A stretch of DNA of 64,000 nt from Macrostomum lignano. Its lineage: Eukaryota. The notes under the pieces were generated by a model, which was given only the letters and a program-made list of their open reading frames with translations, was not told where the DNA came from and searched no databases. The position numbers were made by a program, and so were the translations under genes. This document shows, piece after piece, positions 1-23,338 of this stretch. Location of the stretch: assembly GCA_002269645.1 (NCBI GenBank), contig NIVC01001205.1, positions 248,001 to 312,000 of the forward strand, written 5' to 3'. Each line of letters starts with the position of its first letter. Within the stretch, counting starts at the first letter, position 1.

Positions 1-524
1 GTGGGGAAGCCATTGCCTTGGTGTTTGACTAGGTTTTCACTGCCTTGATTGACTGGGCAACCACGTTGTCAGAATGCTCGACAATTTTAGGCATTGATCA
101 GCTTGTACTTGTATCTGTAGCCGCTCCAATGCATGTATATTTGAGCTGCTTTTTGGCAGGCGAGTCGCTAATTTAATAATTATCTGCAATATAAAACAGC
201 CTGTCACATGTGGTTCAAGCTGCCACACCTGCACCCCATTGCTCGTGAGAACTGAGCAGAGGCCGCCCAAATCCTTGTAGAGCTGAGCTTGAATTCTGCG
301 TCAAGTTTGCGCCACTTTTGACACTGATTTGGCTGATAAAAACAGCAGAAAACAGAAAAAAATGTTTGTCTCTGAGCTGCTTCTGACAGCCCTGCTGCCC
401 TCGATCTGCGGCAGCTGGCCTGCAGCAGGCGCCGAGTTCCCACCAGCTCGAGTGGATAAATACCGACTCGCGATACCTGCTCAAATCTGCAACTCAAAGT
501 GGCCGCTCCAATCAGCGACTCCCA

Positions 525-2540
525 TTGGCGACTCAGCAAATGCAGCACCGCCAGCTACTCGCTGCCTGCCTCGCCGCAGCCACTGCAGCTCTGCTGCTCA
601 CCGGCGCCGCCTCTGCTCAGTGTCCCGCACACGGCTGGACACACCGAGCTCACTCATGCTACAAGTGGTTCAGCGAGCCGAACTACTGGTTTCAGGCCGA
701 GCAGACGTGTCTGTCTCACGGGGCTCAGCTCGCGTCCATCCAAAGTGAGCAAGAGAACCGACTGGTAGGCCGACTGTCTCACTGCAGAGACGCCTGGATC
801 GGTTTGTTCGGCACCGACCTCGACCGTCTGGCCGACCCTACAAGCTACAGGTGGACGGACGGCGGCGGCGTAGGGAGCTTCGAGAGACACAACTTCTCTC
901 AGCTGGACAGCGTTCACAAGCCTCTGATCCGAAGTGACGGTGAGTGGTGGCTCAACTCGCTGTATCACGAGCGGCACCCGTTTGTGTGCAAGTTGAGCGC
1001 CAACTCCAGCAGTCTCGTCGACTGGTGGTGGCGGTCGAAGGGCCGATGTCCCAGCGGCTGGTGGCTGCACGACGAGCAGTGCTACGTGATGCCGCAGTTT
1101 GAGGCCAACTTCAACGAGGCCAACTTCTACTGCCAGCGAAACTCGTCGCAGCTGGCGTCGGTGCTCACCCAGTCTGAGCTGGACTTTGTGAACAAGCTCA
1201 GCTTCGGAATCGACAGCTGCGAGTCGGCAGAGCTGCTCGACTCGGTGTGGCTCGGCCTCATCAAGCTGAACCCCTGCTTCCCTGACAGTGCGGGTCGCGA
1301 GCTCTGCTACCAGTGGACGGATTTCTCAGGGAAACACGACAACAAGCTGCCCGCATGGGAGACTGGACACCCGGACAGTGCGGACTGGACTGTGAACTGC
1401 GTCACGCTGTCAGCTGGTCGACTGCGCAGCGACAGGTGCCACAGCAGGCACAGGTTCGTGTGCAAGACGGAGGCGTCGGACGGGACCTCCACACCTGACG
1501 GAGGCGTCACCTCTGCACCTGACGGAGGCGTCACCTCTGCACCTGACGGAGGCGTCACCTCTGCACCTGACGGAGGCGTCACCTCTGCACCTGACGGAGG
1601 CGTCACGTCTGCACCTGACGGAGGCGTCACGTCTGCACCTGACGGAGGCGTCACCTCTGCACCTGACGGAGGCGTCACCTCTGCACCTGACGGAGGCGTC
1701 ACCTCTGCACCTGACGGAGGCGTTACCTCTGCACCTGACGGAGGCGTCACCTCCGCACCTGACGGAGGCGTCACCTCCACACCTGACGGAGGCGTCACCT
1801 CTGCACCTGACGGCGGCGTCACCTCTGCACCTGACGGAGGCGTCACTCCACCTGTGGACGACCTCGTGGCTGCGTTCGACTTCAGGAGGGGCCTCGACAA
1901 CCTGGTGGACCCGCGCACCTTCGCCATCGAGGACCAGTTCGGCGTGGAGAGGTCGGTAGATGACGGGGCCTGCTTCAAGTGGAATTCCAGTGCCAGTTAC
2001 AGGGAGTTCTACAATGTCGGAGCTCCTGTGGCATTCAATGAGTCGATCTGGAACGCGGCAGAGTGGACCATGTACTTCAGGCTGACTCGGAGCAACGACA
2101 GACGGGCTTTATTTCTGTCGGTCCCGAGCGACCCTATGCGCCCGGATCAGAAGCAAAGCCTTGTTGCTCACATTGATCCGTTTTCTGGGAACACATTTAG
2201 ACTCTTTGTTGGGCAACGCGACCTTGGAAACTCAACACATTTCCTTGGGCATGGCAACATAAACATCTTCAACGGATCGGGCTGTGTTGGCAGCTGGTGC
2301 GACATTCGGTTGGCAATGAAGAACCGCATTTTGGATTCTCCTGCCATCGGAGAGCCGCTGGATGCTATATATTATAACTGGACTCATGAGGTTCAGGAAC
2401 TGGGACTGCAGCAGCTGCGGCTCGGAAATCTTCATCAATTTTCTTCTTCCCCGCGGTTCTGCCTGAGGTGCTTCGGAGTCGCCCGCAGGCAGCTGAGCGC
2501 CGATGAGGTGCGGCAGGCGATGTCGGCCTTCTGCCCCTGA
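525..2540 (+). CDS. Secreted lectin, copy 1: signal peptide + 2 C-type lectin domains + (APDGGVTS)x15 stalk + LamG/pentraxin-like C-terminal domain, intronless
   Basis: 671-aa ORF. Hydrophobic leader LLAACLAAATAALLLTGAASA. CTLD motifs CPxxW...CYKWF...WFQAEQTC...LASI.S.QEN...WIGL...FVC occur twice. C-terminal LVAAFDF...FGVARRQLSADEV resembles the ConA/LamG fold ends. AATAAA 35 nt after the stop. Confidence 0.9.
   Translation: MATQQMQHRQLLAACLAAATAALLLTGAASAQCPAHGWTHRAHSCYKWFSEPNYWFQAEQTCLSHGAQLASIQSEQENRLVGRLSHCRDAWIGLFGTDLDRLADPTSYRWTDGGGVGSFERHNFSQLDSVHKPLIRSDGEWWLNSLYHERHPFVCKLSANSSSLVDWWWRSKGRCPSGWWLHDEQCYVMPQFEANFNEANFYCQRNSSQLASVLTQSELDFVNKLSFGIDSCESAELLDSVWLGLIKLNPCFPDSAGRELCYQWTDFSGKHDNKLPAWETGHPDSADWTVNCVTLSAGRLRSDRCHSRHRFVCKTEASDGTSTPDGGVTSAPDGGVTSAPDGGVTSAPDGGVTSAPDGGVTSAPDGGVTSAPDGGVTSAPDGGVTSAPDGGVTSAPDGGVTSAPDGGVTSAPDGGVTSTPDGGVTSAPDGGVTSAPDGGVTPPVDDLVAAFDFRRGLDNLVDPRTFAIEDQFGVERSVDDGACFKWNSSASYREFYNVGAPVAFNESIWNAAEWTMYFRLTRSNDRRALFLSVPSDPMRPDQKQSLVAHIDPFSGNTFRLFVGQRDLGNSTHFLGHGNINIFNGSGCVGSWCDIRLAMKNRILDSPAIGEPLDAIYYNWTHEVQELGLQQLRLGNLHQFSSSPRFCLRCFGVARRQLSADEVRQAMSAFCP
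1490..1850 (+). repeat. Coding 24-bp tandem repeat (about 15 units) encoding the lectin stalk
   Basis: Unit GCACCTGACGGAGGCGTCACCTCT repeated in frame. Confidence 0.95.
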
Positions 2541-2574
2541 GGCTGCGGACTGTGGCACTTCGAGACTGGTGGTC

Positions 2575-2580
2575 AATAAA
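2575..2580 (+). terminator. Polyadenylation signal of lectin copy 1
   Basis: AATAAA shortly after TGA; conserved in copy 2 at 23157-23162. Confidence 0.65.
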
Positions 2581-2681
2581 GCCATTTATTGCTAATGCTG
2601 ACTTTGTTTCCAAAATACACTGCAGGTTAAGGGAAAGCAAATATTTTGTTTTGTTTCTAGTTTTTGTCTTTTACCGAGAAG

Positions 2682-7223
<4,542 letters not shown>

Positions 7224-8858
7224 TGTGGATGCGTTTTCAAAAGTTTAGTAAAATTTTGCGAGAGCGTAGAAGCATAGTAAGCCATGCAGGCAATTCATAA
7301 CTATAGTGCTACTGCACGAATGATAAGAAATCACTTTAAGCACTTGATTGACCAGGTAACCTCGATACCATATTTCTCAACAGTTTTAGAGGTTTCACTT
7401 TTACAGCTACTGGAACACGGACTTGTACAGCTGGTGTTACAGGGACTTGTACAGCTACTGCTACAGGGACTTGTACAACTACTGTTACAGACTTGTACAG
7501 CTACTGTTAAAGGGACTTGTACAGCTACTCTTACAGGGACTTGTACAACTACTGTTACAGACTTGTACAGCTACTGTTACAGGAACTTGTACAGCTACTG
7601 TTACAGGGACTTGTACAGCTGGTGCTACAGAACAGAGACTTGTGCAGCCGCCTGTAGTGTGAGCATCTTTTGCGTGAATTTTGTTAGTTAATTGATTGTA
7701 TTAGTTTCTATATTGTTATTGAATTATTATTTTGCTTTAGTTAGTCACGTTTTCAATGTACTTTTCTTGTTAGTTAGAATCCAATTTTGCGTAAACAGGC
7801 TAGAAGTCAGACACCAACTGTGACTCAGCGGAGGGTTGAGTTTTTCTGCGAACCCCAGCTTTGCGCGGCCAGCCAATCAGAACCGGCCTGGACCCTGGCA
7901 CGCGGCAAGTTCCAGTTCTACCCGGCGCCGCGGGCGCAGTGCAATTCGGCTTAGCGAGCGGCCGGCCAGACGACCACCACCCGGCTTGAGGGGGGTTTTG
8001 AGGGGTTTGAAAGTGTGTTTGGCAATCGGATCTCACTTCCCTTCTGTTTTTCCCCCTCTGTTCTTCTTTCCCCGGCTTTGATTTTGTCCCGGCTTCCCGG
8101 CCGTTTGCCGATCTGTTTGGTTCGCGCTTTGAGGCACCTGAGTAACTGAGTTCATCACCCCGGTCCATATTTTTGTTCCCTTGCCCGACCGCTTCAGTCT
8201 TGTAGCGTAACGATACGGCAAATTCCTGTCTGAAGTCGAAGTGAAGCTATTAAGCGCGGTCTAGTTAGAGACTGTCAGATTTGACCAAGTACGTGGCCTC
8301 GACCCAGAGGGCCTCAGTGTCACACTGAAGGGCAGCGCTGATAGAATTTAGTCAGTGCTCTGTTGAACGGTCGGTTCGGCAGGGCTCTCGTTTGAGTGTA
8401 GATTCTGGTTTAGGCCAGGGGTTAGAAGTCTTCTCCGTGGTCCTGTGTTCGGTTCCTCTTCTTTCTCAGCTGAGATCTGCTTGCCATTGCGTAACTAAGT
8501 TATTACTAATCGTTTGTCTCGTTATCATTTTCCGCTATTATCAGTTCGAAATTATCTGCGCCGCGAATTGCATTGAAGCTTGTAACTTGAAGTAATCAAA
8601 TTAAATCGTCCAGCCAATTATCAGTCTGTATCATATAGGATTATCACTCTCTAAATCTATTCGGTTCGTGTTCATCTGCGTCCTTCCTTTTCTTGTACCG
8701 TACTGTGACTATTTGAGAAAGACTGGTAGGACTCGCCGACCGGCGATAGGCGATTAGGGCCAATAGCTTTAAAATCTCCGAACGCTCCAAGTAGGTTTGT
8801 CTAGGGCCTAAATAATTGCTTATCGTGCATGCTATATACATTTATTGTATCTATCACA
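7224..8858 (+). mobile_element. 5' LTR (about 1.63 kb) of a Ty3/gypsy-like element, followed by a PBS-like TGG motif at 8861
   Basis: TGTGG...TATCACA termini. Both ends align with the related solo LTR at 39172-40458. Followed by agTGGAGCCCCTGGGAATC, a leader and gag. Confidence 0.75.
7418..7630 (+). repeat. 22-24-bp tandem repeat inside the LTR
   Basis: Unit GGGACTTGTACAGCTACTGTTACA, about 9 copies; duplicated at about 16727-16939. Confidence 0.9.
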
Positions 8859-9382
8859 AGTGGAGCCCCTGGGAATCCAATAGTTAGCAGGCGGCAGTTT
8901 ATTGGTAGGCGCTCTAAGTGAGCAAGCTGAGACTAAAACTCAACGAGTCTGTTCCAGGCTCGTAGCGGCTATTTCGTCAACCACGCAGTGTGCAGCAATT
9001 CCGCATTAGGTGTGGTTTTGCGGTTGGCCAGTTACCCCAAAATACTGAATAGGATTTAGGAGTGGGAAAAAATTGACTTTTTTAAAACTAAATTTTTGCA
9101 CTTTGATAGAAACTTGCGTGTGAAAGCAGATTTTGTTGACAGTTTAAAAATATTATTAGTGTTATCAGCATAGTCTGCGAGTGCGCGCACTAGAGAGTAC
9201 ACCGGTTAAATTTTTATCAGTGTACATTCAGTTTTCTTATCAGTTATTGCCAGTGCGAGCGAGGCGACCGATTCCGCTCATTAGATAAAATAGGAAGCTA
9301 GATTATTGAATCTGTTATAACCTTACAAGTTGTACTTTCTGAAGTTGCAGTAATAGAAAGTCCAATTGGTTGAAACTTAGCA

Positions 9383-10237
9383 ATGGCGCAGGACGGAGAA
9401 ATAAGTCAAGAATCGAAATCAGTTGAGATTAGGAACGAAGGCGAAGTAGATGAGGCCGAACACTTGAGAACGGTAGTGAGAGAACTGCAGGATCGCATAA
9501 GAAGAATGGAAACCGAAAATCCTGAACCTAGAGTGATTTTGAAGTCGCATAACAGCGTAGCAAAGCCCAAGCCATACCGACTTGGCTCAGATTTTGAACT
9601 GTTTCTAAGAATCTTCAACAACTACTGTCAAGGCAACGGTATAGATGAATCGGCTAAAGTGTATCAACTATTGTCGCTCCTAGACGAAGACGCCTATAAG
9701 GTTTACATTAACTTAGGCCTAGCGAGCACCGAACCTTTTGAAAGCATTGAAAAGACTTTAAAGGACAAATTCAAGCCCGTAGGACAGAAGGAAGAGGCGA
9801 AGCTAGAGCTGATGAACCGCAGGCAGAAGGAAGATGAATCATTAGAAGAATTCTACGATGCGCTAGTTGAATTATAGTTAGGAAAGCAGGACTAGAGAGT
9901 CAGGCTAGAGAGCGAGTCTCTGAACGATTCGAAGCCGCCATAGCAAATTACAAAGTAAGGCGCGCAGTCATCGCTTATCGTAGAACGCATGAGTCGAAAT
10001 ATCAGACGCAAGATTTGTTGACCGCAGCGAAGAACGAGGAGATCCTCGAAGAACTCGCAAACCCAGGCAGCCAAAAGAATAGGAGGAAGCAAGAGGGCTC
10101 AAATACTCTGACGGCTCAAGTAGAAAAGGAAGCGAAGAAGCCAGTGGCAGCACCCGGTGCGGGGCAAGGCCATCAGTCATTTGGACCTCAGTTTGCTTCC
10201 CCGCCGGCCAACTATCCTTCACAGTACCAGCCGTACC
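9383..10237 (+). pseudogene. gag of the gypsy-like element, frameshifted (about 9875) and interrupted by LINE B
   Basis: Matches 18692-19544 except for a 2-nt insertion. PKPY...DFELFLRIFNNY and RRQKEDESLEEFY capsid-like motifs. Confidence 0.85.
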
Positions 10238-10751
10238 GAAGGCGTATTCAGCATGCCAGTGAAGTATGAGACAGTCTAGGCCCATGGGCTAAGGTCTGCG
10301 ATGCTTCACGCCTGCCCCTATCTTCAGCAGGTCAATGCTGGTGGGAGGTCTGCACCCTCTATTTGCCTCTGGCAGCCGCAGACCCCCCCCCCCACGCTGT
10401 CTCGCAAGTCGACCCAGGGTACTCGTCCCCGCGTGTGTTCAAGGCAGTCCCTAGGGCTGCTGGACAGACTGGGCTCCGGCGCTGGCGACCCTATCCAGTG
10501 GCTTCGGCCGAATTTGGGTATGCGGGTCTGGCTCGCCAACCTGCAGGCCGTGGTACTGCTCAACGTACTCTCTAATGCCTAAGGTGTTGACCGTGCCGAT
10601 GGGCTGGAAGGCCGGGGAGTAGTCCGGTCGCAAGCGGTCCCCCTCCTGGTGTCGGGCCAGCCTTGAGGGTGCTATTGGCCTACTGCCCGGTCAGGTGGAG
10701 CGGCCGGGTGGGTACCGCGCCCCTTTGAGGGTAGCCCACCAACCTTTTATC

Positions 10752-12257
10752 ATGGCCTTCGAGCCGACTATGGATAAACAAGCTATTTCTAGGGACGGGG
10801 ACCCTTCTAAACCCCAACCTCAGTCCGAAGGACCGGCCGGCCCTGCTGGCAGATCCCAACCGACTGATTCAACTGTGGCAAAGGAAGGACCGGCTGGCTC
10901 TGCTGGCAGATCCGACCAGAGCTACCAAACTCAAAATACCCTAAGACCTGCCAGCTCCGCTGGTGGATCTAAGGGAACCGCGAGCTCTGAGCCTAAAGGA
11001 CCGGCCAAATCTGGCAGATCCGATGAAGCTCAGCGGGCTCGGCTTGAGCGCAAACGCGCTAAACAACGCGCCAAAAGGCAGGCCAAGAAGGGAGCTGCGG
11101 GGGCCAAAGCGGCGGCGTCCACCATGGATGCTGAAGCGACTGGAGTCCCAAGGCAACCAGGCGGGCCGGCCGGTGGAAGCTCCAGTAGTTCAGCGGCGGC
11201 GCTCCCTGGAGCTGCTGCCGCGGCTGCTGAGGCCGAAACCACGGCGCAACAAATGGCCACTGCCAACAAGGAGGTTCCTTCGGGAGCTACCTTTGCGGCG
11301 AAGGCCAAGGCCAAAATCCCGGGAGTGATCATCCAAGGTCGCGACCAGGACTGGACCACTGATCAGCTTCAAAAAGTGTGGAGTGCTGTTGACTCCTATC
11401 TGATTGAGCTGACTGTCGAGGAGGGAATCTCCATCGGCGTTGAGCGGATGGTGCTGCGAAGCACATTCGTTCTTATTGCTCCTAGCAGCGAGGAGGACGC
11501 TCGGCGGCTGCTCCAGCGGCTACCGACGGTCTCCTTGGATGCTGACCTTGGTGGAGCTCTTTTTCTTCGCGAGGGCCAGCGTCCAAAGACGATACCCTAT
11601 GTGGTTTTCGTCCCTGCTAAGAGCACCGCAGCTGGACCAGACGTTATTCGCCGGGTCCTACTGCGTCTGAACCCCGACCTCCCTGCTAGTGGACTGGTGT
11701 ATCACCGCAAAGTCCGCAGGGGGGAGACGGGCAACTCAATTGTCCTCGGCCTTTCCAGCACTTGGGCGAGTCGGTACCCTAATGGATCCTCTTTCCAGCT
11801 GGGTGCCCTCAAGCTCAAGTTGCGCCGAGGAAAGTCTGCCAAAGGGAAGGCTACTGCCAACCCCGGCATCTCCGGCAAGAGCGGGGCGCAGTCTAAGGCC
11901 CAAGGAAAGGCGCAAGCCGATCCCAAAGCCAAAGCTGCATCTCGCCCCTCTGCTAGCAGCAGTTCGGCGACCGCGGTAACGGCTCCGGCCGAGCCCCGGG
12001 AACCAAACCTGCCAGTCGGAGAAGGAGTTGAGGACGAGGCCGGGTCTTCGGAATCCGAGCTCTCCTCGGCCACCTTGGTGGGGTCTGAAGGTAAAGATGC
12101 AGGTGAGGAAGCTTCCTCCATCCTGTCATCGGAGCCTGAGGACTCTGCTGGGGGGGCCGGTGGGGGTGAGGAGGCCATGGACGTCGACCAACTCCCATCT
12201 CCCAGTCAAGCCCCAGCGGCCTGGGACGAGGACGATCTGTTGTCCAAGTCTCCTTGA
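10752..12257 (+). CDS. LINE B ORF1 (nucleic-acid chaperone-like; central region reminiscent of DUF4780 of LOA elements, no CCHC)
   Basis: First ATG at 10752. Low-complexity basic N-terminus, folded core about IPGVIIQG...LKLKLRRGK, acidic tail. Confidence 0.8.
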   Translation: MAFEPTMDKQAISRDGDPSKPQPQSEGPAGPAGRSQPTDSTVAKEGPAGSAGRSDQSYQTQNTLRPASSAGGSKGTASSEPKGPAKSGRSDEAQRARLERKRAKQRAKRQAKKGAAGAKAAASTMDAEATGVPRQPGGPAGGSSSSSAAALPGAAAAAAEAETTAQQMATANKEVPSGATFAAKAKAKIPGVIIQGRDQDWTTDQLQKVWSAVDSYLIELTVEEGISIGVERMVLRSTFVLIAPSSEEDARRLLQRLPTVSLDADLGGALFLREGQRPKTIPYVVFVPAKSTAAGPDVIRRVLLRLNPDLPASGLVYHRKVRRGETGNSIVLGLSSTWASRYPNGSSFQLGALKLKLRRGKSAKGKATANPGISGKSGAQSKAQGKAQADPKAKAASRPSASSSSATAVTAPAEPREPNLPVGEGVEDEAGSSESELSSATLVGSEGKDAGEEASSILSSEPEDSAGGAGGGEEAMDVDQLPSPSQAPAAWDEDDLLSKSP

Positions 12258-12296: not shown

Positions 12297-15200
12297 ATGA
12301 CTAAGCTCCACGCTGCCAAAGGAGCGACATTCTGTCTGCAAATAAATTTACAGCATTGCGTATCTGCGTCAGTAAATCTGATGAAGATTGCTGAGCTGTA
12401 CAGGCCAGGCCTCATCCTGATCCAGGAACCCTGGATGCGCAACGGTAAGTTGCCCAACATTCCCTCTGGCTACTCTGATTTTTATGTGTGTGGCCCGGGG
12501 AACAGCCGCCCTAGAGCGGCTATCCTCGCTGCTAGCCATCTCCAGGCTTGGCTGAGGACTGATCTCTCTGATGGAGACCTTTGCGTCATCCAATCTAATC
12601 ATTTCTCTCCGCGTACGTGTCTTGTTGCCTCGGTTTATATCCCAGGCGACAGAGACCCTGCTCCCGAGAGTTTACTGCGCCTTGCGCAGTACTGCGAGTC
12701 CCAGAACGCTGAGCTGTGCTTAGGGGGCGACCTCAACGCGCACCACAAGCACTGGGGCAGCAAAGATACCAACACTAGAGGAGAGGAGCTTCTGGCCCTC
12801 ATCTCTAACACAAACCTCATGCTCTGCAACCGCGGCAGCACTCCTACCTTTAATAATGGCAGATGGACCGAGGTCCTCGACGCCACACTCGTTACCCCAA
12901 GACTCTTTGACAGAGTCAAGGAGTGGAGAGTCTGGTCTGAGGAGCCCTCCCTGTCTGACCACTGCTTTATCGCCTTTAATATCGCGGACACTAAAACCCA
13001 GTCTCCGATCACTTGGAGACGCAATATCCGCAACACTGATTGGGCGGCCTACAAGGCTGCCCTTGATCTGCACCTGCAGGAACTCACGGACTTACGTCCG
13101 ATTGAGACCTGCGAGGATGTGGATCATATGGCTGAGACGCTGACAGGTTGCATTATTGCAGCCTACGAAGCGGCTTGTCCTGCTCGCGCCTACAGAGGCA
13201 AGACCTCGGCGCCGTGGTGGAACCCGGAGCTGGGGAAACTCAGGCGGAAGGCCAAAAGCCTTCATCGCCGTGCCATGAAGACCGGAAACCCGGAGGACAT
13301 GGAGCTTTTCCGGCAAGCCTCCCGCAATTTCAAATCTGAAGTGCGCAAGGCCAAGGAATGTAAGTGGCGCCAATTCTGCAATGAATTGGATCAAGACAGA
13401 CCTACTTCTAGGCTTGTCAAGGCCCTTACAATGGACAAAATGTCCAAATTAGCCATGATCAAAAAAGATGATGGCTCTCTTACTAAAGACCCTGAAGAAG
13501 TGCTTCAGCATATGCTTAGCACATTCTTCCCGAGGGTACCTACTGCTAGACCGGAGCCCAACCATTCGATGGATGGAGCCACCCTAGCGGCGGGCATTGT
13601 CACTGAAGACCTAATCGCTCGTGCGGTCAGAACCTTCAAACCCTTCAAATCTCCTGGACCTGATGGTATCTACCCTGTTCTCCTTCGTGAAGCAGCCAAG
13701 ATACCCTCGTTCCTGAGACTCACCCGCAATCTTATGCGGGCCTCTATCCAGCTGGGATACGTTCCCAAAAGCTGGACTGAAGCTCGAGTAGTCTTTATTC
13801 CCAAACCTGGGAAGGGTGACTACCAAAGCGTCAAGGCCTTCCGGCCAATTAGCTTAACGTCAGCAATGCTTAAGCTCACTGAGAGGCTTATTCTCTGGCG
13901 GCTGCTCTCCTGCGAGCTGACAGCGATGCCCCTCAGCAATAATCAGCACGCCTTCCGTACCGGGAGGTCGACTGACAGCGCCCTGCATGCGATTGTCGAA
14001 AAGATTGAACGGGCGGTACTGGGTGACGGTTACGCCCTGGCTCTCTTTCTTGACATTGTTGGCGCCTTCGACAACGTTATCTTTGAAGCGTTTCAGAGGG
14101 CCCTTCAAAATCGCAAAGCTCATGCTACCCTCATACGGTGGATCATGTACATGATCTCCAACCGTACGGTCACTGCCCAACTTCTTGGGCAAACTGCCTC
14201 CACCAGAGTCTGTAAGGGTGGACCCCAAGGCGGAGTCCTCACCCCGACGCTCTGGAACCTGGTCATGGACGCTCTTCTGAGTGACTCCCGACCTGACCCC
14301 GTCTTCAAAGTCGGGTATGCTGATGACGTCACGGCCATTGTGGCAGGACCGTCTCCCAGCACGCTCAGGGATCTGATGCAGAGCTTTATCCGCAAAGCAG
14401 AATCCTGGGCCAATGACAATGGTTTGGAACTCTCTGAGCCCAAAACCGTTGCCATTATGTTTACCAGCAGACTACGCTGGAACATACGTCCTCTGCAGCT
14501 CTACGGCAGAGATATTGCCTTCGCGCACCAGACCAGATGTCTCGGGGTCACACTTGACCACCGGCTCAACTGGTCCTTCCACGTGAAAGCAAAAGCTAAG
14601 CGTGCCTCAGCCATCCTGGCCCAGCTCCGACGAGCACTTGGCACTTCTTGGGGTCTATCCCCAAAGCGGCTTTGGTGGATCTATACTTCCGTAGTTAGAC
14701 CTGCCATTACGTACGCCTCTGTTGTCTGGGTTAGCGCTACCCAGGTCAAAAGCCATGCAGACCTGCTCAACACGATCCAAGGCAGAGCGTGTAGGCTCAT
14801 CTGCAACGCCACCAGGTCCACGCCCTTTGCTGGCATGGGGGCCTTTCTTAATCTTCCGCCTCTTGACCTCTTCATCAGGGGTGAGGCGGCTAGAACGACG
14901 CGGCGTCTAATTGATGCCGGCGTCAAATTCATTTACATGAGAGCACCTGCTAAGCGGAACCTTGTCCCGCATAGCGATCTGTGCCTCAACTTTCTCAACG
15001 AGTGTCAGGCCAATCGCGTCTTCACCGATGGCATTGCCTCAACGCTCAACCTGAGACAGCGCTACTCCGTAGCTATCGACTCGCGCGATAACATCAATGA
15101 CCATTGGAACCCTGGTGAGCTTCATTGCTACACCGACGGTTCTAAGCAGTCAGCCAACACCGGCTTTGGTGTTGGAATCTTTCTGAACGGGAGGGTCATC

Positions 15201-16037
15201 GCTACCCACGCTCAATACACTGGGGTCAACTCCAGTGTTTTCCAAAATGAAGTTCTGGCCATCAGCTCCTGCACTGCAGAGCTTCTCGCCACTGGCGTTA
15301 CTGGTAAGAACATCATTTTCCATTCGGACAGCCAAGCTGCCTTGCACGCCATCAGTGGCTGCAGCACCAACTCTGCTACAGTCCTTGACTGTATCAAACT
15401 CCTCAATGTGTTGGGTTCCGCCAACAAAATTACCCTTAAGTGGGTTCCGGGGCATGTGGGGATCCGAGGAAATGAGTTGGCTGACACCCTTGCAAAAGTT
15501 GGTGCCTCCGGCTCCTCTCTCGGCCCCGAACCTCTTGTCCCGATTCCTGGCTGTGTCATCGACTCGCGCATCAAAGCGTGGATCAGGACTCAGCACCGCT
15601 CGACTTGGGCGAACCGCACGAACTGCAGGCAATCCAGAGGCGCTGTCCCTCAGCCCTCTCACCAGCTCCGGAAGCTCCTCTTGCGCCTCTCGCGCAGAGA
15701 CATCCGGGCTGCCACCATGACCCTCTCTGGTCACGGCTGCTTCTCCAGGCACCAGTACCTGCAGGGCAACGCCACCAACGCCACCTGTAGTTTCTGCAAC
15801 TCAGGTGACGAAACCGCTGAGCATTTCGTCAGCATCTGTCCCGCCTTCACGCGGGCCAGACTCACTTACCTCGGGCCACACACATCTATTACTGAAGCGT
15901 GCAAACCCGAAAACTTTAATCAGCTCATGCGCTACCTTCGGGCCACCCGCAGGGCTGAACTCTCCTTTCCAGAGAGCACCATAGCTGCTGGCGACACTGG
16001 GGGACCTCCCTGGGCGGCGCCAACCCTCCGTCCATAG
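12297..16037 (+). CDS. LINE B ORF2: AP endonuclease + reverse transcriptase + RNase H + C-terminal zinc knuckle
   Basis: 1246 aa, uninterrupted. QINLQH, IQEPW, GGDLNAH, SDH (APE); [28 protein letters not shown] (RT); YTDGSK, E, SDSQAAL, WVPGH...NELAD (RNase H); CSFC...ETAEH...C. Confidence 0.95.
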   Translation: MTKLHAAKGATFCLQINLQHCVSASVNLMKIAELYRPGLILIQEPWMRNGKLPNIPSGYSDFYVCGPGNSRPRAAILAASHLQAWLRTDLSDGDLCVIQSNHFSPRTCLVASVYIPGDRDPAPESLLRLAQYCESQNAELCLGGDLNAHHKHWGSKDTNTRGEELLALISNTNLMLCNRGSTPTFNNGRWTEVLDATLVTPRLFDRVKEWRVWSEEPSLSDHCFIAFNIADTKTQSPITWRRNIRNTDWAAYKAALDLHLQELTDLRPIETCEDVDHMAETLTGCIIAAYEAACPARAYRGKTSAPWWNPELGKLRRKAKSLHRRAMKTGNPEDMELFRQASRNFKSEVRKAKECKWRQFCNELDQDRPTSRLVKALTMDKMSKLAMIKKDDGSLTKDPEEVLQHMLSTFFPRVPTARPEPNHSMDGATLAAGIVTEDLIARAVRTFKPFKSPGPDGIYPVLLREAAKIPSFLRLTRNLMRASIQLGYVPKSWTEARVVFIPKPGKGDYQSVKAFRPISLTSAMLKLTERLILWRLLSCELTAMPLSNNQHAFRTGRSTDSALHAIVEKIERAVLGDGYALALFLDIVGAFDNVIFEAFQRALQNRKAHATLIRWIMYMISNRTVTAQLLGQTASTRVCKGGPQGGVLTPTLWNLVMDALLSDSRPDPVFKVGYADDVTAIVAGPSPSTLRDLMQSFIRKAESWANDNGLELSEPKTVAIMFTSRLRWNIRPLQLYGRDIAFAHQTRCLGVTLDHRLNWSFHVKAKAKRASAILAQLRRALGTSWGLSPKRLWWIYTSVVRPAITYASVVWVSATQVKSHADLLNTIQGRACRLICNATRSTPFAGMGAFLNLPPLDLFIRGEAARTTRRLIDAGVKFIYMRAPAKRNLVPHSDLCLNFLNECQANRVFTDGIASTLNLRQRYSVAIDSRDNINDHWNPGELHCYTDGSKQSANTGFGVGIFLNGRVIATHAQYTGVNSSVFQNEVLAISSCTAELLATGVTGKNIIFHSDSQAALHAISGCSTNSATVLDCIKLLNVLGSANKITLKWVPGHVGIRGNELADTLAKVGASGSSLGPEPLVPIPGCVIDSRIKAWIRTQHRSTWANRTNCRQSRGAVPQPSHQLRKLLLRLSRRDIRAATMTLSGHGCFSRHQYLQGNATNATCSFCNSGDETAEHFVSICPAFTRARLTYLGPHTSITEACKPENFNQLMRYLRATRRAELSFPESTIAAGDTGGPPWAAPTLRP

Positions 16038-19100: not shown

Positions 19101-19544
19101 AAGAGGCGAAGCTAGAGCTGATGAACCGCAGGCAGAAGGAAGATGAATCATTAGAAGAATTCTACGATGCGCTAGTTGAATTAGTTAGGAAAGTAGGACT
19201 AGAGAGTCAGGCTAGAGAGCGAGTCTCTGAACGATTCGAAGCCAGCATAGCAAATTACAAAGTAAGGCGCGCAGTCATCGCTTATCGTAGAACGCATGAG
19301 TCGAAATATCAGACGCAAGATTTGTTGACCGCAGCGAAGAACGAGGAGATCCTCGAAGAACTCTCAAACCCAGGCAGCCAAAAGAATAGGAGGAAGCAAG
19401 AGGGCTCAAATACTCTGACGGCTCAAGTAGAAAAGGAAGCGAAGAAGCCAGTGGCAGCACCCGGTGCGGGGCAAGGCCATCAGTCATTTGGACCTCAGTT
19501 TGCTTCCCCGCCGGCCAACTATCCTTCGCAGTACCAACCGTACC
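16137..19544 (+). repeat. 3.4-kb direct repeat, copy 2
   Basis: Starts immediately after the LINE B tail; offset 9307-9309 from copy 1. Confidence 0.95.
16533..18166 (+). mobile_element. Duplicate 5' LTR of the gypsy-like element
   Basis: Near-identical to 7224-8858; PBS-like motif at 18169. Confidence 0.75.
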
Positions 19545-19861
19545 AGAATTATCAGCCTCAGTTTGACTACAGGCAATGGCAACCTAGGTTTGCCCATAGA
19601 CAGATGAATTCAAGCTATAGGCCACAGGCACCAGTGCAGCCTCCGAATAGCTTCCGGCCACAGCACCATATGAGCAGTTATTCGAGACCCTATAATAGGC
19701 AGTCTTCGCCCTTTGTCAGGCCCGTCATGACACGCCCGCCACGCTTTGGTCACGAGGCCGGAGGGGCCAATGACAGGTTCAAACCTTCGGGGGCGAACGC
19801 GCCAAATGCGAGAAAGGCCTGTTATGAGTGTGGCGACGAATATCAGCGTTCAAAACGCTGA
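18692..19861 (+). CDS. gag of the gypsy-like element, truncated within its zinc knuckle; no pol follows
   Basis: 389-aa ORF with capsid-like region, Q/P/R-rich linker and a half knuckle CYECGDEY, then unrelated sequence. Confidence 0.85.
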   Translation: MAQDGEISQESKSVEIRNEGEVDEAEHLRTVVRELQERIRRMETENPEPRVILKSHNSVAKPKPYRLGSDFELFLRIFNNYCQGNGIDESAKVYQLLSLLDEDAYKVYINLGLASTEPFESIEKTLKDKFKPVGQKEEAKLELMNRRQKEDESLEEFYDALVELVRKVGLESQARERVSERFEASIANYKVRRAVIAYRRTHESKYQTQDLLTAAKNEEILEELSNPGSQKNRRKQEGSNTLTAQVEKEAKKPVAAPGAGQGHQSFGPQFASPPANYPSQYQPYQNYQPQFDYRQWQPRFAHRQMNSSYRPQAPVQPPNSFRPQHHMSSYSRPYNRQSSPFVRPVMTRPPRFGHEAGGANDRFKPSGANAPNARKACYECGDEYQRSKR

Positions 19862-21214
19862 TATGCTATTACAAACTTATCATAGATATTTAATGTTAGA
19901 CCCACCCATTTGCCTGCACTAAAACAGCCACGCAGACCATGCGTGCCCTCTCTGTGTTAGTTTATCTAACTGCCTAACTATGCAAAAAAGCAAATAAGAT
20001 GGGTGGGGCGGAAAAATATCACGCCACTACCCAACGCTGCATTATAAATACAATGCAATTGAAAGAGCCGAGGCTCTCCACTGCCGAGTTGAGTAGAGTT
20101 TGAGCTCAAACCTAAGAAAAGGACTTGTCTCAGTTCTTCGAAGCTTCTGTCTGTCGTGGCAGAGGGTTAGCAGGCGTGTAAGGTAGTTGGCGTGAGAGGC
20201 CTTTCAGAGACTACCGTTAAACGACCTGTTACAACGAAAGCAACCTGGCCAGAGACTGTCCAACTAGACGAAATTCTTTAAACTACCGACGGGGCGGCAC
20301 CAAGGGAGGGCCAACCGCCCCCAGCCACTGAATCGATTCGCTCCCAATAGAAGAGCTGCAGCAGTAGAAGATCAGCAAGTTAGATTAGGCAATGAAGAAT
20401 ATGGCAACTTAGTTTGGTATAATTATTACAGAGGCTACGGATTTCTGCGAGATAGCAATAATAGATATATTTTCTTTCATGTGACTAATATTAATATAGC
20501 GACTGATTACGAAATTACGCACTTTCTGCGCCAGAGGGCGACAGTAAAATTTATCCGCACTAGCGATAACTACTCAGTAGGAAACAGAGAGCAGTCAATG
20601 TTAAAATTTGCTCAAGCGAGGAACGCAGATTAGCAGAAATCGATAAACAGAAGTCAGCGAGCTTAGCCAGACAGTCAGAGCAATTGACAGAAGAATTAGA
20701 GAAGCGAAGCGAAGCTGCGGCAGCTCAGAGAAGTGCATTAAACAGCATAGACTTGCGACTCAGTGACGTAGAAGGCAAGAAAGCTTCATCAGACGAATCG
20801 AAAGTAGTAAAAGAATTGTCAGAACTTAGAACCGAACTGAAGGACTTTCCAGGAAGGCACAATCATCTGCGTCAATGCATATTTGAGTTGCTTTTTTGGC
20901 TCGTTAATTGTTGATTTTATTTAATAAACGCCAGTAAAAAGGCCAGGCCAGCAAGCTTGAAACCCTCTCTATTCCAATTATAGCTGAGATTGAATTTTGC
21001 ATCAATTCTGCGCAAACGTTTACCCCTGATTCAGATGTTAAAAAAAAATCGGAGAAATTCTGCTTGTCTCAGAGCTGCTTCTGCGCAATTTCGTTCGTTC
21101 TGAGCGGACAGCTCTGCTGTCCGAGCCACCTGTCTGCTCGAATGGATAAATACCGACTCACAATGCCTGCTCAAATTTGCAACTCAAAGTGGCCGCTCCA
21201 ATCAGCGACTCCCA

Positions 21215-23122
21215 TTGGCGACTCAGCAAATGCAGCACCGCCAGCTACTCGCTGCCTGCCTCGCCGCAGCCACTGCAGCTCTGCTGCTCACCGGCGCCGC
21301 CTCTGCTCAGTGTCCCGGACACGGCTGGACACACCGAGCTCACTCATGCTACAAGTGGTTCAGCGAGCCGAACTACTGGTTTCAGGCCGAGCAGACGTGT
21401 CTGTCTCACCGGGCTCACCTCGCGTCCATCCAAAGTGAGCAAGAGAACCGACTGGTAGGCCGACTGTCTCACTGCAGAGACGCCTGGATCGGTTTGTTCG
21501 GCACCGACCTCGACCGTCTGGCCGACCCTACAAGCTACAGGTGGACGGACGGCGTAGGCGGCGTAGGGAGCTTCGAGAGACACAACTTCTCTCAGCTGGA
21601 CAGCGTTCACAAGCCTCTGATCCGAAGTGACGGTGAGTGGTGGCTCAACTCGCTGTATCACGAGCGGCACCCGTTTGTGTGCAAGTTGAGCGCCAACTCC
21701 AGCAGTCTCGTCGACTGGTGGTGGCGGTCGAAGGGCCGATGTCCCAGCGGCTGGTGGCTGCACGACGAGCAGTGCTACGTGATGCCGCAGTTTGAAGCCA
21801 ACTTCAACGAGGCCAACTTCTACTGCCAGCGAAACTCGTCGCAGCTGGCGTCGGTGCTCACCCAGTCTGAGCTGGACTTTGTGAACAAGCTCAGCTTCGG
21901 AATCGACAGCTGCGAGTCGGCAGAGCTGCTCGACTCGGTATGGCTCGGCCTCATCAAGCTGAACCCCTGCTTCCCTGACAGTGCGGGTCGCGAGCTCTGC
22001 TACCAGTGGACGGATTTCTCAGGGAAACACGACAACAAGCTGCCCGCATGGGAGACTGGACACCCGGACAGTGCGGACTGGACTGTGAACTGCGTCACGC
22101 TGTCAGCTGGTCGACTGCGCAGCGATAGGTGCCACAGCAGGCACAGGTTCGTGTGCAAGACGGAGGCATCGGACGGCACCTCCACACCTGACGGAGGCGT
22201 CACCTCTGCGCCTGACGGAGGCGTCACCTCTGCGCCTGACGGAGGCGTCACCTCCACACCTGACGGAGGCGTCACCTCTGCACCTGACGGAGGCGTCACC
22301 TCTGCGCCTGACGGAGGCGTCACCTCCACACCTGACGGAGGCGTCACCTCCACACCTGACGGAGGCGTCACCTCTGCACCTGACGGAGGCGTCACCTCTG
22401 CACCTGACGGAGGCGTCCCTCCACCAGTTGACGGCCTCGTGGCTGCGTTCGACTTCAGGAAGAGCCTCGACAATCTGGTGGACCCGCGCACCTTCGCCAT
22501 CGAGGACCAGTTCGGCGTGGAGAGATCGGCAGAGGACGGGGCCTGCTTCAAGCAGAATTCCAGTGCCAGATACAGGGAGTTCTACAATGTCGGAGCTCCT
22601 GTGGCATTCAATGAGTCGATCTGGAACGCAGCAGAGTGGACCATGTACTTCAGGCTGACTCGGAGCAGCGGCAGCTTTGTTCGGTTTCTGTCGGTCCCGA
22701 GCGACCATTTGCGCCCGGATTGGAGGGAAAGCCTTATTGCTGGCATTGATCAATATTCGGGGGACAGGTTTATATTTTATTTTAGACAAAATGACCTTGG
22801 AAACTCAACGCATTTCCGTTGGCATGGCAACGACCACGACTTCAACGGGTCGGGCTGTGTTGGCAGCTGGTGCGACATTCGGCTGGCAATGAAAAACCGC
22901 ATTTTGGATTCTCCTGCCATCGGAAAGCCGCTGAGCGTTCACTATTGGAACTCGACAATCAGTGCTTATGAACTGGGACTGCAGCAGCTGCGGCTCGGAA
23001 ATGTTTATTCATATTATGATTATTATTCTTCACAGCGGCTCTGCATGAGGTGCTTCGGAGTCGCCCGCAGGCAGCTGAGCGCCGATGAGGTGCGGCAGGC
23101 AATGTCGGCCTTCTGCCCCTGA
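21215..23122 (+). CDS. Secreted lectin, copy 2 (2 CTLD + 10-unit stalk + LamG/pentraxin-like domain)
   Basis: 635-aa ORF paralogous to 525-2540; N-half near identical, C-terminal domain diverged. Confidence 0.9.
   Translation: MATQQMQHRQLLAACLAAATAALLLTGAASAQCPGHGWTHRAHSCYKWFSEPNYWFQAEQTCLSHRAHLASIQSEQENRLVGRLSHCRDAWIGLFGTDLDRLADPTSYRWTDGVGGVGSFERHNFSQLDSVHKPLIRSDGEWWLNSLYHERHPFVCKLSANSSSLVDWWWRSKGRCPSGWWLHDEQCYVMPQFEANFNEANFYCQRNSSQLASVLTQSELDFVNKLSFGIDSCESAELLDSVWLGLIKLNPCFPDSAGRELCYQWTDFSGKHDNKLPAWETGHPDSADWTVNCVTLSAGRLRSDRCHSRHRFVCKTEASDGTSTPDGGVTSAPDGGVTSAPDGGVTSTPDGGVTSAPDGGVTSAPDGGVTSTPDGGVTSTPDGGVTSAPDGGVTSAPDGGVPPPVDGLVAAFDFRKSLDNLVDPRTFAIEDQFGVERSAEDGACFKQNSSARYREFYNVGAPVAFNESIWNAAEWTMYFRLTRSSGSFVRFLSVPSDHLRPDWRESLIAGIDQYSGDRFIFYFRQNDLGNSTHFRWHGNDHDFNGSGCVGSWCDIRLAMKNRILDSPAIGKPLSVHYWNSTISAYELGLQQLRLGNVYSYYDYYSSQRLCMRCFGVARRQLSADEVRQAMSAFCP
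22181..22420 (+). repeat. Coding 24-bp tandem repeat (about 10 units)
   Basis: Same unit as in copy 1, five units fewer. Confidence 0.95.
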
Positions 23123-23261: not shown

Positions 23262-23262
<1 letters not shown>

Positions 23263-23294
<32 letters not shown>

Positions 23295-23338
23295 ATGTGT
23301 CTGTCCGTCTGTCTGACTTAGTGTCTGTCTGTCTGTCG
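23263..23338. repeat. Short (TCTG)n microsatellite
   Basis: Same position relative to the lectin 3' end as the long tract at 2682. Confidence 0.85.

Follow-up and report, generated by a model that had tools for sequence, protein, structure and literature searches.

How do two genes that encode nearly identical lectin domains come to carry C-terminal domains that differ in patches of replaced codons? The question is raised by genes A and B of Macrostomum lignano, which are located in the window (the whole 64-kb stretch of DNA that was analysed).

Organization of genes A and B

The ORFs of genes A and B are both intact, collinear, and intronless and are carried by the + strand. The features assigned to the two genes, in coordinates of the window, are the following.

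446..539, +, putative core promoter and 5'UTR of gene A, where the tract shared by the paralogs begins (multiple alignment of upstream flanks and blastn)
540..2540, +, gene A, 666 aa, composed of a signal peptide, CTLD1, CTLD2, a stalk, and a C-domain (ORF and Pfam)
540..617, +, predicted signal peptide of gene A, aa 1-26, ending in ...TGAASA and followed by Q (sequence reading)
621..992, +, CTLD1 of gene A, aa 28-151, in the homogenised constant module (second stretch of Pfam Lectin_C)
1047..1466, +, CTLD2 of gene A, aa 170-309, in the constant module (Pfam Lectin_C, residues 189-310)
1485..1846, +, mucin-like stalk of gene A, 15.1 tandem 24-nt units encoding PDGGVTSA/T (TRF)
1848..2084, +, N-terminal part of the gene A C-domain, with a conserved sequence (omega 0.15-0.45) and partial homogenisation
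2085..2456, +, variable core of the gene A C-domain, in which hypervariable patches alternate with framework (delimited as 2093-2460 in the preliminary description)
2268..2351, +, invariant framework block FNGSGCVGSWCDIRLAMKNRILDSPAIG within the gene A core, 28 identical codons (P = 5e-5)
2457..2680, +, conserved C-terminal tail FCLRCFGVARRQLSADEVRQAMSAFCP and 3'UTR of gene A, with the stop codon at 2538-2540 and AATAAA at 2577-2582
21136..21229, +, putative core promoter and 5'UTR of gene B, inside the tract shared by the paralogs
21230..23122, +, gene B, 630 aa, with the same architecture as gene A (ORF and Pfam)
22177-22421, +, stalk of gene B, 10.2 repeats
22658..23038, +, variable core of the gene B C-domain, the counterpart of 2085-2456 in gene A

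A TATA-like sequence, GGATAAATA, is present at 454-462 upstream of gene A, and the TATA and the transcription start of this gene are putatively assigned to 446..539. Cleavage of the signal peptide is predicted to occur after aa 26.

Pfam detected Lectin_C in both proteins, with a score of 71 bits (E 1.6e-19, two stretches) for A and of 69.9 bits for B (gathering cut-off 22.6). The other Pfam matches were a repeat-driven match to Cornifin and sub-threshold matches to UL45/Xlink. An outgroup M. lignano paralog, P0012, displayed 47% identity in the CTLDs. As in other CTLD proteins, the usual framework of cysteines is present in the two Lectin_C domains. The canonical Ca2+-dependent carbohydrate site of true C-type lectins consists of EPN or QPD plus WND. 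Unlike these lectins, CTLD2 displays HPD and RSD (GHPD...RLRSDRC) at the aligned Ca2+/sugar sites, which we take to be the positions of EPN/QPD and WND, and CTLD1 contains no equivalent motifs. Since the canonical motifs are absent from the CTLDs of A, sugar binding is not implied.

Divergence between genes A and B

Comparison of the two genes revealed 8 nucleotide differences in 945 positions of the signal peptide and lectin domains versus 77 in 372 positions of the block (Fisher p = 6e-36). In a sliding comparison, identity was ~70% upstream of 446, 99-100% across 489 to 2090, ~80% across 2093 to 2460, and 98-99% from 2461 to ~2680, in the 3'UTR as far as a (GTCT)n microsatellite. The preliminary description had listed 3 substitutions and one inserted codon over the first ~320 aa, and the recount was in exact agreement: the first ~316 aa differ by three replacements (A29G, G61R, and Q63H) and an extra codon in B, together with five synonymous changes. 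In the block (2093-2460), the earlier count of ~45 replaced and ~7 synonymous codons with a 3-aa indel was likewise reproduced, with 44-47 replaced codons, 7 synonymous-only codons, and a 3-codon indel. The described arrangement in patches between invariant blocks was also recovered, as the replaced codons were clustered (37 runs observed versus 57.7 expected, P < 5e-5) and the longest invariant run, the FNGSGC...SPAIG framework at 2268..2351, extended over 28 codons. This framework block is conserved in A, B, and four of the paralogs described below (C, E, G, and H).

The 45:7 count had been read as a sign of selection. The Nei-Gojobori method gave an Sd of 17.6, an Nd of 60.4, a dS of 0.248, and a dN of 0.245 for the block, in which non-synonymous and synonymous sites are in a ratio of 3.4:1. 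The 45:7 count is not evidence for selection, because the block-wide dN/dS was 0.99. Two or three nucleotide changes were present in 18 of the 44 replaced codons. Third positions differed in 34% of the replaced codons versus 7.5% of the conserved codons, and the difference at codon positions 1-2 was 62% in the replaced codons versus ~1% in the adjacent framework.

A family of paralogs in M. lignano

Eight further copies (C, D, D', E, E', G, G', and H) were recovered from the M. lignano assembly beside A and B. Thus, the further variants predicted by the preliminary description do occur in the genome, as C, D, E, G, and H together with recent duplicates, and the family comprises at least six distinct variants at at least five loci. 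Exact-match look-ups of the gene A product and of protein P0004 in public assemblies gave no record, so that the locus of the window itself was not placed in the public assembly. The coordinates within the retrieved loci are as follows.

C: L001, 9449-11294
D: L002, 10037-11836
D': L006, 10034-11815
E: L003, 10037-11710
E': L005, 10061-11734
G: L003, 20241-19447, - strand
G': in L005
H: L007, 10037-12123
Fragment F: L003, 13210-13445

Nonsense codons were found in three of the ten copies (C, D', and H), consistent with partial decay. Paralog G has entirely lost the CTLDs, and the copy number of the stalk repeat varies from 0 to 19 across the paralogs. No homolog of the family outside M. lignano was detected in the protein collections (5.8e9 word-indexed proteins and an exhaustive HMMER search of 1.84e9 representatives). 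As judged from these searches, this family of predicted secreted proteins is undescribed, multigenic, and restricted to M. lignano. Neither the family nor Mlig011059, Mlig019923, Mlig009022, and Mlig008942 were found in the full-text literature searched and in the supplements of M. lignano expression papers, and these sources yielded no expression data for the family. GenBank gene models are present for C, D, D', E, E', and H; the gene models of this assembly derive from a genome-guided RNA-seq transcriptome (PMC5730564).

Concerted evolution of the constant module

The dS of the constant part was 0.010-0.035 in all 28 paralog pairs. In the core, dS was 0.19-0.31 among A, B, G, and H, reached 0.7-1.5 to C and E, and was saturated to D. 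The N-terminal part and the tail of the C-domain followed the hierarchy of the core, with omega values of 0.1-0.45; among A, B, C, G, and H, the dS of the N-terminal part (1848..2084) was 0.10-0.23, and the omega of the tail was 0.06-0.6 in paralog pairs. Since the dS of the constant part remained at 0.01-0.035 even where the C-domains were saturated, the duplications are old and the 5' 1.5 kb has been homogenised by gene conversion. These values, together with the ~70% identity upstream, run counter to the idea that the frozen CTLDs reflect a recent duplication followed by explosive change.

The borders of the shared tract provided further information. In A, B, C, D, E, E', and G, the DNA on the 5' side was unalignable or ~70% identical; near-identity set in sharply at about -94 and continued up to the ATG, and blastn placed the start of the shared tract at 441/446. 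The 3' flanks of the copies were unrelated, with the exception of the A/B pair. On its 3' side, the shared tract ended at a point that varied from pair to pair, at ~2093 for A/B/C, at ~1979 for D, and at the end of CTLD2 for E, and the divergent island of A and B was bordered on either side by 98-100% identity. The dS contrast, the unalignable flanks, and the variable tract ends assign the family to concerted evolution by interlocus gene conversion. Repeated conversion holds the constant module 97-99.5% identical among all copies, and the ~125-codon core escapes homogenisation and retains its old divergence. Conversion tracts extending over the core may be broken off where they meet the strongly diverged patches or may be purged by selection for diversity.

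GC3 was 0.79 in the constant part and 0.41-0.62 in the core. GC-biased gene conversion was considered as the origin of this step and was weakened as a candidate; the step is not proof of biased conversion because the GC3 of the unrelated outgroup lectin is also 0.77.

Mlig_3_7 is an assembly of high redundancy with abundant repeats (PMC5730564), and the 5' near-identity could in principle have been generated by collapsed or consensus-corrected repeats during assembly or polishing. We regard such an artefact as extremely unlikely, since the same pattern was seen in the window and, in the public assembly, at seven loci distributed over five contigs, every constant part has substitutions, indels, and a stalk copy number of its own, and intact ORFs cross the junctions.

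A recent duplication followed by targeted hypermutation or templated diversification of the core, whether DGR-like, AID-like, or retroelement mediated and whether germline or somatic, would account for the extreme local contrast at codon positions 1-2, and elements bearing a reverse transcriptase are present between and around the genes. However, the reverse transcriptase ORFs of the window belong to ordinary LINE (APE-RT-RNaseH) and LTR (PR-RT-RNaseH-IN) elements, and self-BLAST and tblastn searches of the 64-kb window detected the core nowhere beyond genes A and B, i.e., no template repeat of the DGR type. The divergences of the core, N-terminal part, and tail form one hierarchy up to saturation with purifying omega values outside the patches, and the DNA upstream of A and B is merely ~70% identical. 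Among the recent duplicates, G and G' were identical over 795 nt, E and E' differed at 6/375 positions in the core versus 8/945 in the constant part, and D and D' differed at 3/372 versus 11/940 positions. In the assembled sequence, these recent pairs thus showed no sign of ongoing hypermutation, and the lack of excess change in their cores gives no hint of a dedicated mutator or of somatic diversification; we consider this explanation highly improbable. The analogy with antibodies and FREPs drawn in the preliminary description is accordingly confined to the logic of the system.

Selection on the variable core

Close paralogs displayed a block-wide omega of 0.9-1.6, and distant paralogs one of 0.3-0.7. 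Comparison of the M2a and M1a models gave LRT values of 131 for seven taxa, 68 for A/B/G/H, and 69 for the intact genes alone, and the result was stable across all three four-taxon topologies. Multi-nucleotide mutation was ruled out as the sole cause, since LRT values of 29.5 and 45.6, with omega values of 5.7-9.9, were still obtained when the model permitted multi-nucleotide changes. Simulations under M1a gave LRT values of 0-4.4, indicating that the code behaves properly. Neutral simulations with rate heterogeneity, in which 10% of the sites evolve 7-8x faster, reproduced the M2a signal with LRT values of 31-85. The plain M1a/M2a test was therefore rejected as proof of selection, and the case for selection rests on a dual-rate codon model, the strictest test used, in which the hypervariable sites receive their own synonymous rate.

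In our own implementation of the dual-rate test, applied to 4-7 sequences with 20 bootstrap replicates, the LRT was 15.8 for A/B/G/H (11.5% of sites, synonymous rate of 1.7x, omega of 6.95) and 14.3 for seven taxa (15% of sites, omega of 3.4). The 20 parametric simulations under neutral rate heterogeneity gave a maximum LRT of 3.57, and none of them reached the observed values. The test assumes a single tree, an assumption broken by recombination, since the site patterns among the four close paralogs conflict (10:7:7). Diversifying selection on the variable domain, with an omega of 3.4-7 for 11-15% of the codons, is supported statistically. The selection proposed in the preliminary description holds for this subset of codons, for which omega is well above 1 with a synonymous rate of their own, but not for the block as a whole, for which omega is ~1.

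The codons of the selected class start, in gene A, at 2103, 2109, 2148-2154, 2163, and 2178; at 2187-2211 (every second codon), 2232, 2244, and 2253-2265 (every second codon); and at 2367-2388 (mostly every second codon), 2430-2436, and 2445. The N-terminal part of the C-domain contains one small variable spot (codons 1980-1997), in which alignment column 45 belongs to the selected class. Among the selected sites, R, S, Y, W, and H were overrepresented (odds ratio of 1.57 for FWYH, p = 0.02).

The core might also be merely the part that conversion does not reach, with loosely constrained surface patches that drift or decay and a framework under purifying selection. This explanation agrees with the block omega of ~1, with the excess of third-position differences in replaced over conserved codons, with the stop codons in 3 of the 10 copies, and with a GC3 decreasing to 0.41-0.62, as expected if codon usage were unmaintained; moreover, its fast sites are those that mimic the M2a signal. 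However, the dual-rate model was superior to exactly this null in both data sets, with 0 of the 20 null simulations exceeding 3.6, and analysis of the intact genes alone left the result unchanged. We judge neutral drift of an unconverted core to be rather unlikely.

The diversity of the patches may instead stem mainly from mosaic conversion over short tracts among diverged paralogs and pseudogenes and not from point substitution, selection then acting on the shuffled combinations, a process that would complement selection on the core. The 10:7:7 four-taxon informative sites are interleaved along the domain. The patch TRSSGS(F/W)VRFLSVPSDHLRPD is common to B and G, which then diverge, and DWR(E/R)SL.AGIDQYS.DRF is common to B and H. 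Pseudogene copies and fragment F are potential donors, many codons differ at two or three positions, and frequent conversion is clear elsewhere in the gene. Chicken Ig pseudo-V genes and VSG or var genes provide parallels. On the other side, homoplasy at hypervariable sites is inseparable from recombination with 6-7 variants, and no third core copy or cassette array is present within the 64-kb window. Such shuffling as the main source of the diversity appears improbable to us.

Predicted fold of the C-domain

The C-domain, which contains six conserved cysteines, had been labelled LamG/pentraxin. Pfam identified no family at E <= 10 for any of the six C-domains searched and no LamG or pentraxin domain in the full proteins, and a profile search against PDB sequences returned chance matches alone (E 0.24-0.56). 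In the search of 5.8 billion proteins and the HMMER search of 1.84e9 representatives, the only homologs of the C-domain were the M. lignano paralogs, the remainder being low-complexity or repeat matches. AF2 was unusable with a single sequence (pLDDT 36.6) and, with an alignment of six sequences, gave a low-confidence model (pLDDT 52.5, pTM 0.57) with 10 strands over residues 75-213. Foldseek found no match in the PDB at E <= 0.001, and its top 50 matches, all weak (E 0.007-0.05, TM 0.2-0.3), were almost all ConA-like jelly rolls, e.g., galectins, CBM40, VIP36, and GH16. The LamG/pentraxin label was thus not confirmed, and the model points to a fold that is probably a beta-sandwich weakly resembling the ConA-like (galectin-type) class.

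Among the 26 selected core sites, 13 pairs had a spacing of 2, for which 4.9 pairs were expected (P <= 5e-5), and a spacing of 4 was found in 9 pairs. They fall in AF2-predicted strands 87-94, 106-114, 117-126, 132-143, and 173-182 and also in the loop 196-201. In this model, the selected codons would lie on the solvent-facing sides of the strands of the predicted beta-sandwich and may form a single surface. Of the single ligand-binding face initially proposed, the i,i+2 spacing expected for one side of a strand was found, but a simple hairpin register sets residues 107 and 109 on the side opposite 117-125. Neutral drift does not predict an omega of 3.4-7 limited to every second strand residue.

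Galectins bind their ligands via alternate-position side chains on adjacent strands of one sheet, and LamG and pentraxin belong to the ConA-like fold class together with galectins. The C-domain resembles galectins in its weak Foldseek similarity and in the i,i+2 pattern of its selected sites. Unlike galectins, LamG, and pentraxin, it displays no sequence similarity or signature of these proteins and has its six conserved cysteines.

Working model and comparison with known systems

We consider it fairly probable that, as a whole, this is an old family in which a converted constant module is joined to a core under diversifying selection, forming a small recognition repertoire. The constant module comprises the putative core promoter, the 5'UTR, the signal peptide, the two non-canonical CTLDs, and the mucin-like stalk and usually reaches the first third of the C-domain as well. 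Within the core, ~45% of the codons belong to a frozen framework, and 11-15% (27 codons) change amino acid at several times the rate of synonymous sites. In the working model that we find most likely, the germline would encode a small repertoire of recognition proteins that differ, copy by copy, in the candidate binding surface exposed on a common scaffold, with the shared CTLD-stalk part possibly providing a common anchoring or effector function. The copies undergo birth and death, as seen from the nonsense codons of C, D', and H and from the lack of CTLDs in G.

In plant NLR/R-gene clusters, the hypervariable residues of the LRRs are solvent-exposed residues of the xxLxLxx beta-strand motif. 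The M. lignano family shares with them a germline multigene organization, birth-and-death evolution, and sequence exchange between paralogs, as well as positive selection on alternate solvent-facing residues of beta-strands, in a recognition surface for the NLRs and in a predicted one here. It differs from them by another fold and domain set, by encoding putatively secreted rather than intracellular proteins, and by its much smaller size.

Conotoxin and other venom or secretory superfamilies combine a conserved signal/pro region with a hypervariable mature region. The sharp intragenic contrast is similar here, with a 5' part that is near-identical, including at synonymous sites, and a hypervariable 3' part. 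Unlike in conotoxins, the conserved part consists of 1.5 kb of folded domains plus the promoter, the evidence is for gene conversion and not for a mutator, and the variable part is a predicted beta-sandwich of ~230 aa rather than a short peptide.

FREPs, CREPs, GREPs, and VCBPs are candidate non-vertebrate analogues of variable receptors. FREPs, in which IgSF is joined to a fibrinogen-related domain, are diversified somatically, and VCBPs display allelic hyperpolymorphism. Like the snail FREPs, CREPs, and GREPs and the amphioxus VCBPs, the M. lignano proteins are putatively secreted mosaics that pair a lectin-type domain with a diversified domain, a recognition role being a candidate function here. 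Unlike in FREPs and VCBPs, the lectin-like domains are constant and the orphan domain varies, and Pfam detected no IgSF, fibrinogen, or chitin-binding domain in the full proteins of A and B. The family could thus be conceived as an independent constant/variable recognition system, in which the binding sheet of an orphan jelly roll is diversified by selection, re-assorted among genes and pseudogenes, possibly somatically, and attached to a shared CTLD-stalk effector for immunity or for self/partner discrimination; we hold this extended reading to be quite improbable.

Implications

To our knowledge, no diversified recognition molecules have been described in free-living flatworms. Should the family merely drift or decay, it would still offer a clear textbook example of concerted evolution that stops at a boundary inside a gene, and a warning that such boundaries fool tests of the M2a type. 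Among 5.8 billion proteins, the C-domain has no sequence relatives that can be detected, so that both its structure and its ligand would add new knowledge. Transgenesis and RNAi are available in M. lignano, a model for work on sexual conflict, bioadhesion, and regeneration. With ~six variants, intronless genes, and clear constant and variable modules, the family is small and tractable. It would permit direct tests of how gene conversion and diversifying selection partition one gene and of the use, be it on microbes, mates, or substrates, for which a flatworm requires a variable binding surface.

Layout and divergence of genes A and B

Two paralogous lectin genes, separated by 18.7 kb, were located on the same strand.

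540-2540, + strand: gene A, intronless ORF, 666 aa
21230-23122, + strand: gene B, intronless ORF, 630 aa

Both products begin with a signal peptide, followed by two Pfam Lectin_C domains (E about 1e-19; C-type lectin-like domains, CTLD1 and CTLD2), a stalk, and a C-terminal domain (C-domain) of about 230 aa, in which six cysteines are conserved and several N-glycosylation sequons occur. A-B identity was about 70% upstream, 99-100% at 489-2090, about 80% at 2093-2460 (the variable core of the C-domain), and 98-99% at 2461-~2680, with a (GTCT)n microsatellite as the 3' limit of homology. This microsatellite lies right after the shared 3'UTR (2682-3103, 106 copies, after gene A; 23262-23337, 19 copies, after gene B). 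The preliminary description of a near-identical front and a block of replaced codons was accurate in its counts: across the first ~316 codons there are 3 replacements, 5 synonymous changes, and one additional codon, and block 2093-2460 has 44-47 replaced codons, 7 codons changed only synonymously, and a 3-codon indel. The differences are concentrated in the block far beyond chance (Fisher 6e-36) and the replacements are patchy (runs test P < 5e-5; invariant run of 28 codons, P = 5e-5). However, the dN/dS well above 1 that the raw counts implied does not hold block-wide, the Nei-Gojobori omega being 0.99.

The coding sequences of A (540-2540) and B (21230-23122) lack introns, and the mean number of introns per M. 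lignano gene is 4.9 (PMC5730564). A retrogene origin of these genes, with a shared tract starting just upstream of a TATA-like box, is conceivable.

Further copies of the family

Searching protein collections and the public M. lignano assembly yielded further copies, at loci (L001 to L007) with their own coordinates. The constant modules of A and B display ~97-99% nucleotide identity to genes of this assembly (GCA_002269645.1), so the sequence belongs to this species or to a very closely related one.

L001: C, in-frame TAG within the final variable patch, about 11171
L002: D, intact; C-domain just 48% identical to that of A
L006: D', TCA-to-TGA nonsense mutation in CTLD2, 10821-10823
L003 and L005: E and E', intact; short Pro-rich stalk replacing the repeats
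L003 20241-19447, - strand: G, intact 264-aa ORF, no CTLDs
L005 20201-19407, - strand: G', intact 264-aa ORF, no CTLDs
L007: H, in-frame TGA at 11825-11827, 1-bp deletion about 11918, deletion in the inter-CTLD linker
L003 13210-13445, - strand: F, short frameshifted C-domain fragment adjoining gene E

G and G', 100% identical across 795 nt, retain the family signal peptide (first 31 codons) followed by one stalk-repeat remnant and the C-domain, both CTLDs being deleted. They lie about 8 kb from E and E', inverted, and share about 300 nt with the region upstream of E. E/E', G/G', and D/D' are recent duplicates, as expected of a highly redundant assembly from a neopolyploid species (PMC5730564). 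In-frame stops were found in 3 of 10 family copies, two of them inside hypervariable patches. The stop-bearing copies and fragment F show birth-and-death turnover, and they are possible donors for gene conversion. Since the GenBank gene models derive from a genome-guided RNA-seq transcriptome (PMC5730564), several family copies are transcribed, with the caveat of multi-mapping in the identical part.

The stalk is encoded by tandem 24-nt units specifying PDGGVTSA, present in 15 units in A (1485-1846), 10 in B (22177-22421), none in E, 1 in G, 6-8 in D', D, and C, and 19 in H. Thus, the distance from the constant lectin part to the variable domain also varies greatly among paralogs.

Neither a Pfam family nor a PDB sequence matched the C-domain, searches of protein collections revealed no relatives outside M. 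lignano, and a literature search found no published description of the family. An outgroup lectin (P0012, BOX15_Mlig018359g1, L004 10001-11884) has two CTLDs 47% identical to those of the family and a different tail, of acidic Ser/Pro-rich repeats, without the C-domain. An older two-CTLD gene may thus have acquired the variable, putatively jelly-roll domain later.

Concerted evolution of the constant module

The dS of the signal-peptide and CTLD part was 0.010-0.035 in all 28 pairs. Despite these low values, the A-D and B-D cores are saturated (dS > 1.6) and their C-terminal tails have a dS of 1.2-1.6. Throughout the C-domain, from N-part to core and tail, divergence shows a single consistent hierarchy, in which A, B, G, and H are close, C and E intermediate, and D far; outside the core, the C-domain is under ordinary purifying selection (omega 0.1-0.45). 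Similarity among all copies has a sharp start about 94 nt 5' of the ATG, immediately upstream of the TATA-like GGATAAATA, and flanks beyond the shared tract are unrelated between copies, with the exception of A-B (about 70% identical). Where near-identity stops on the 3' side depends on the pair: near 2093 for A/B/C, near 1979 for D, and at the end of CTLD2 for E. These patterns point to old duplications whose 5' 1.5 kb was repeatedly homogenised by interlocus gene conversion, and not to recent duplication. The A-B tail and 3'UTR are also homogenised, and the variable core is therefore an island between A and B.

GC3 stepped from 0.79 in the constant part down to 0.41-0.62 for the core and up to 0.85-0.93 for the tail. 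Biased gene conversion as the cause of this step was weakened by the GC3 of the unrelated outgroup lectin (0.77), and we therefore record just a loss of the usual codon bias in the core.

Tests for selection on the core

Codon models were fitted by maximum likelihood with a self-written program, which gave likelihood ratio test (LRT) values of 0-4.4 on data simulated under M1a. Comparison of M2a with M1a assigned 11-15% of sites to omega 9-13, with LRTs of 131 (seven copies), 68 (A/B/G/H), 69 (intact genes only), and 48 (A/B/G). This signal was stable across topologies and was kept when double and triple nucleotide changes were allowed (LRT 29.5 and 45.6). Patches escaping conversion are expected to look like uniformly faster neutral sites. 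Simulation of this neutral alternative, in which 10% of sites evolve 7-8 times faster at synonymous and non-synonymous positions alike, yielded M2a LRTs of 31-85, and the M2a test is therefore undiagnostic here. A dual-rate comparison, in which synonymous rates may differ among site classes and the question is whether one class needs beta > alpha, gave an LRT of 15.8 for A/B/G/H (11.5% of sites, synonymous rate 1.7x, omega 6.95) and 14.3 for seven copies (15% of sites, omega 3.4), versus 0 of 20 null simulations above 3.57. Diversifying selection on about 27 core codons is therefore judged supported but not proven, given few sequences, self-written code, few bootstraps, and a clear phylogenetic conflict among close copies (site patterns 10:7:7).

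The selected codons form 13 pairs at spacing 2, versus 4.9 expected (P <= 5e-5), and 9 pairs at spacing 4, as in alternate residues of TFRLFVGQR, GHGNINI, and AIYYNWTHE; Arg, Ser, Tyr, Trp, and His are enriched at these positions. An AF2 model of the C-domain from six family members, of modest quality (pLDDT 52.5, pTM 0.57), was all-beta, placing the selected sites on predicted strands 87-94, 106-114, 117-126, 132-143, and 173-182 and on loop 196-201. Foldseek returned no confident match with this model, and the weak top matches were almost all ConA-like jelly rolls (galectins, CBM40, VIP36, and GH16). The two-residue periodicity, which is independent of the model, would mean that variable side chains lie on one side of each strand.

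Surrounding repeats and the mutator question

The DNA between and beyond A and B is repeat-rich, consisting of LINE and LTR retroelements and satellite arrays. A 3.4-kb direct repeat (6828-10240 and 16137-19548, 99.2% identical), with a gag-like ORF at 18692-19861, flanks a LINE-type ORF (12297-16037; endonuclease, RT, and RNase H domains) and a 520-aa ORF without a Pfam match (10695-12257); this arrangement arose by either nested insertion or segmental duplication. Tandem satellite arrays occupy 24870-25556, 26675-27289, 29858-30416, 31828-32791, 33534-34318, and 35758-36673, in a region where GC skew is strong, at +0.37 to +0.46 over 24-28 kb and negative over 28-32 kb. The minus-strand translation of the first array is 40-50% identical to the PDGGVTSA repeat, and this array may be left over from one that encoded a stalk, or the similarity may be a compositional coincidence. 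Two LTR-retrotransposon-type gene sets in opposite orientation (45414-51818, - strand; 52187-60023, + strand) carry zinc-knuckle gag, protease, RT, RNase H, and integrase, and an RT fragment (3388-4290, - strand) lies just downstream of gene A.

The recent duplicate pairs displayed no excess core change: G/G' are identical, and core versus constant differences were 6/375 versus 8/945 nt for E/E' and 3/372 versus 11/940 for D/D'. No template copy of the core was found within the window, and the reverse transcriptases near the genes are parts of ordinary LINE and LTR elements. These observations were counted against a mutator.

Interpretation

The contrast between A and B is real, and the initial proposal of a constant lectin part joined to a diversified binding surface is partly right; the mechanism differs from that suggested by the raw counts. 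The constant module evolves in concert next to an old, conversion-resistant core, with statistically supported positive selection at periodic positions of predicted beta-strands and continuing birth and death of copies. Plant R genes, venom gene families, and invertebrate lectin families already provide examples of such a pattern, whereas the combination of CTLDs with an orphan variable domain, and this domain itself, are undescribed. The reading that we favour from these sequences is that the family may provide M. lignano with a small germline repertoire of secreted candidate recognition proteins.
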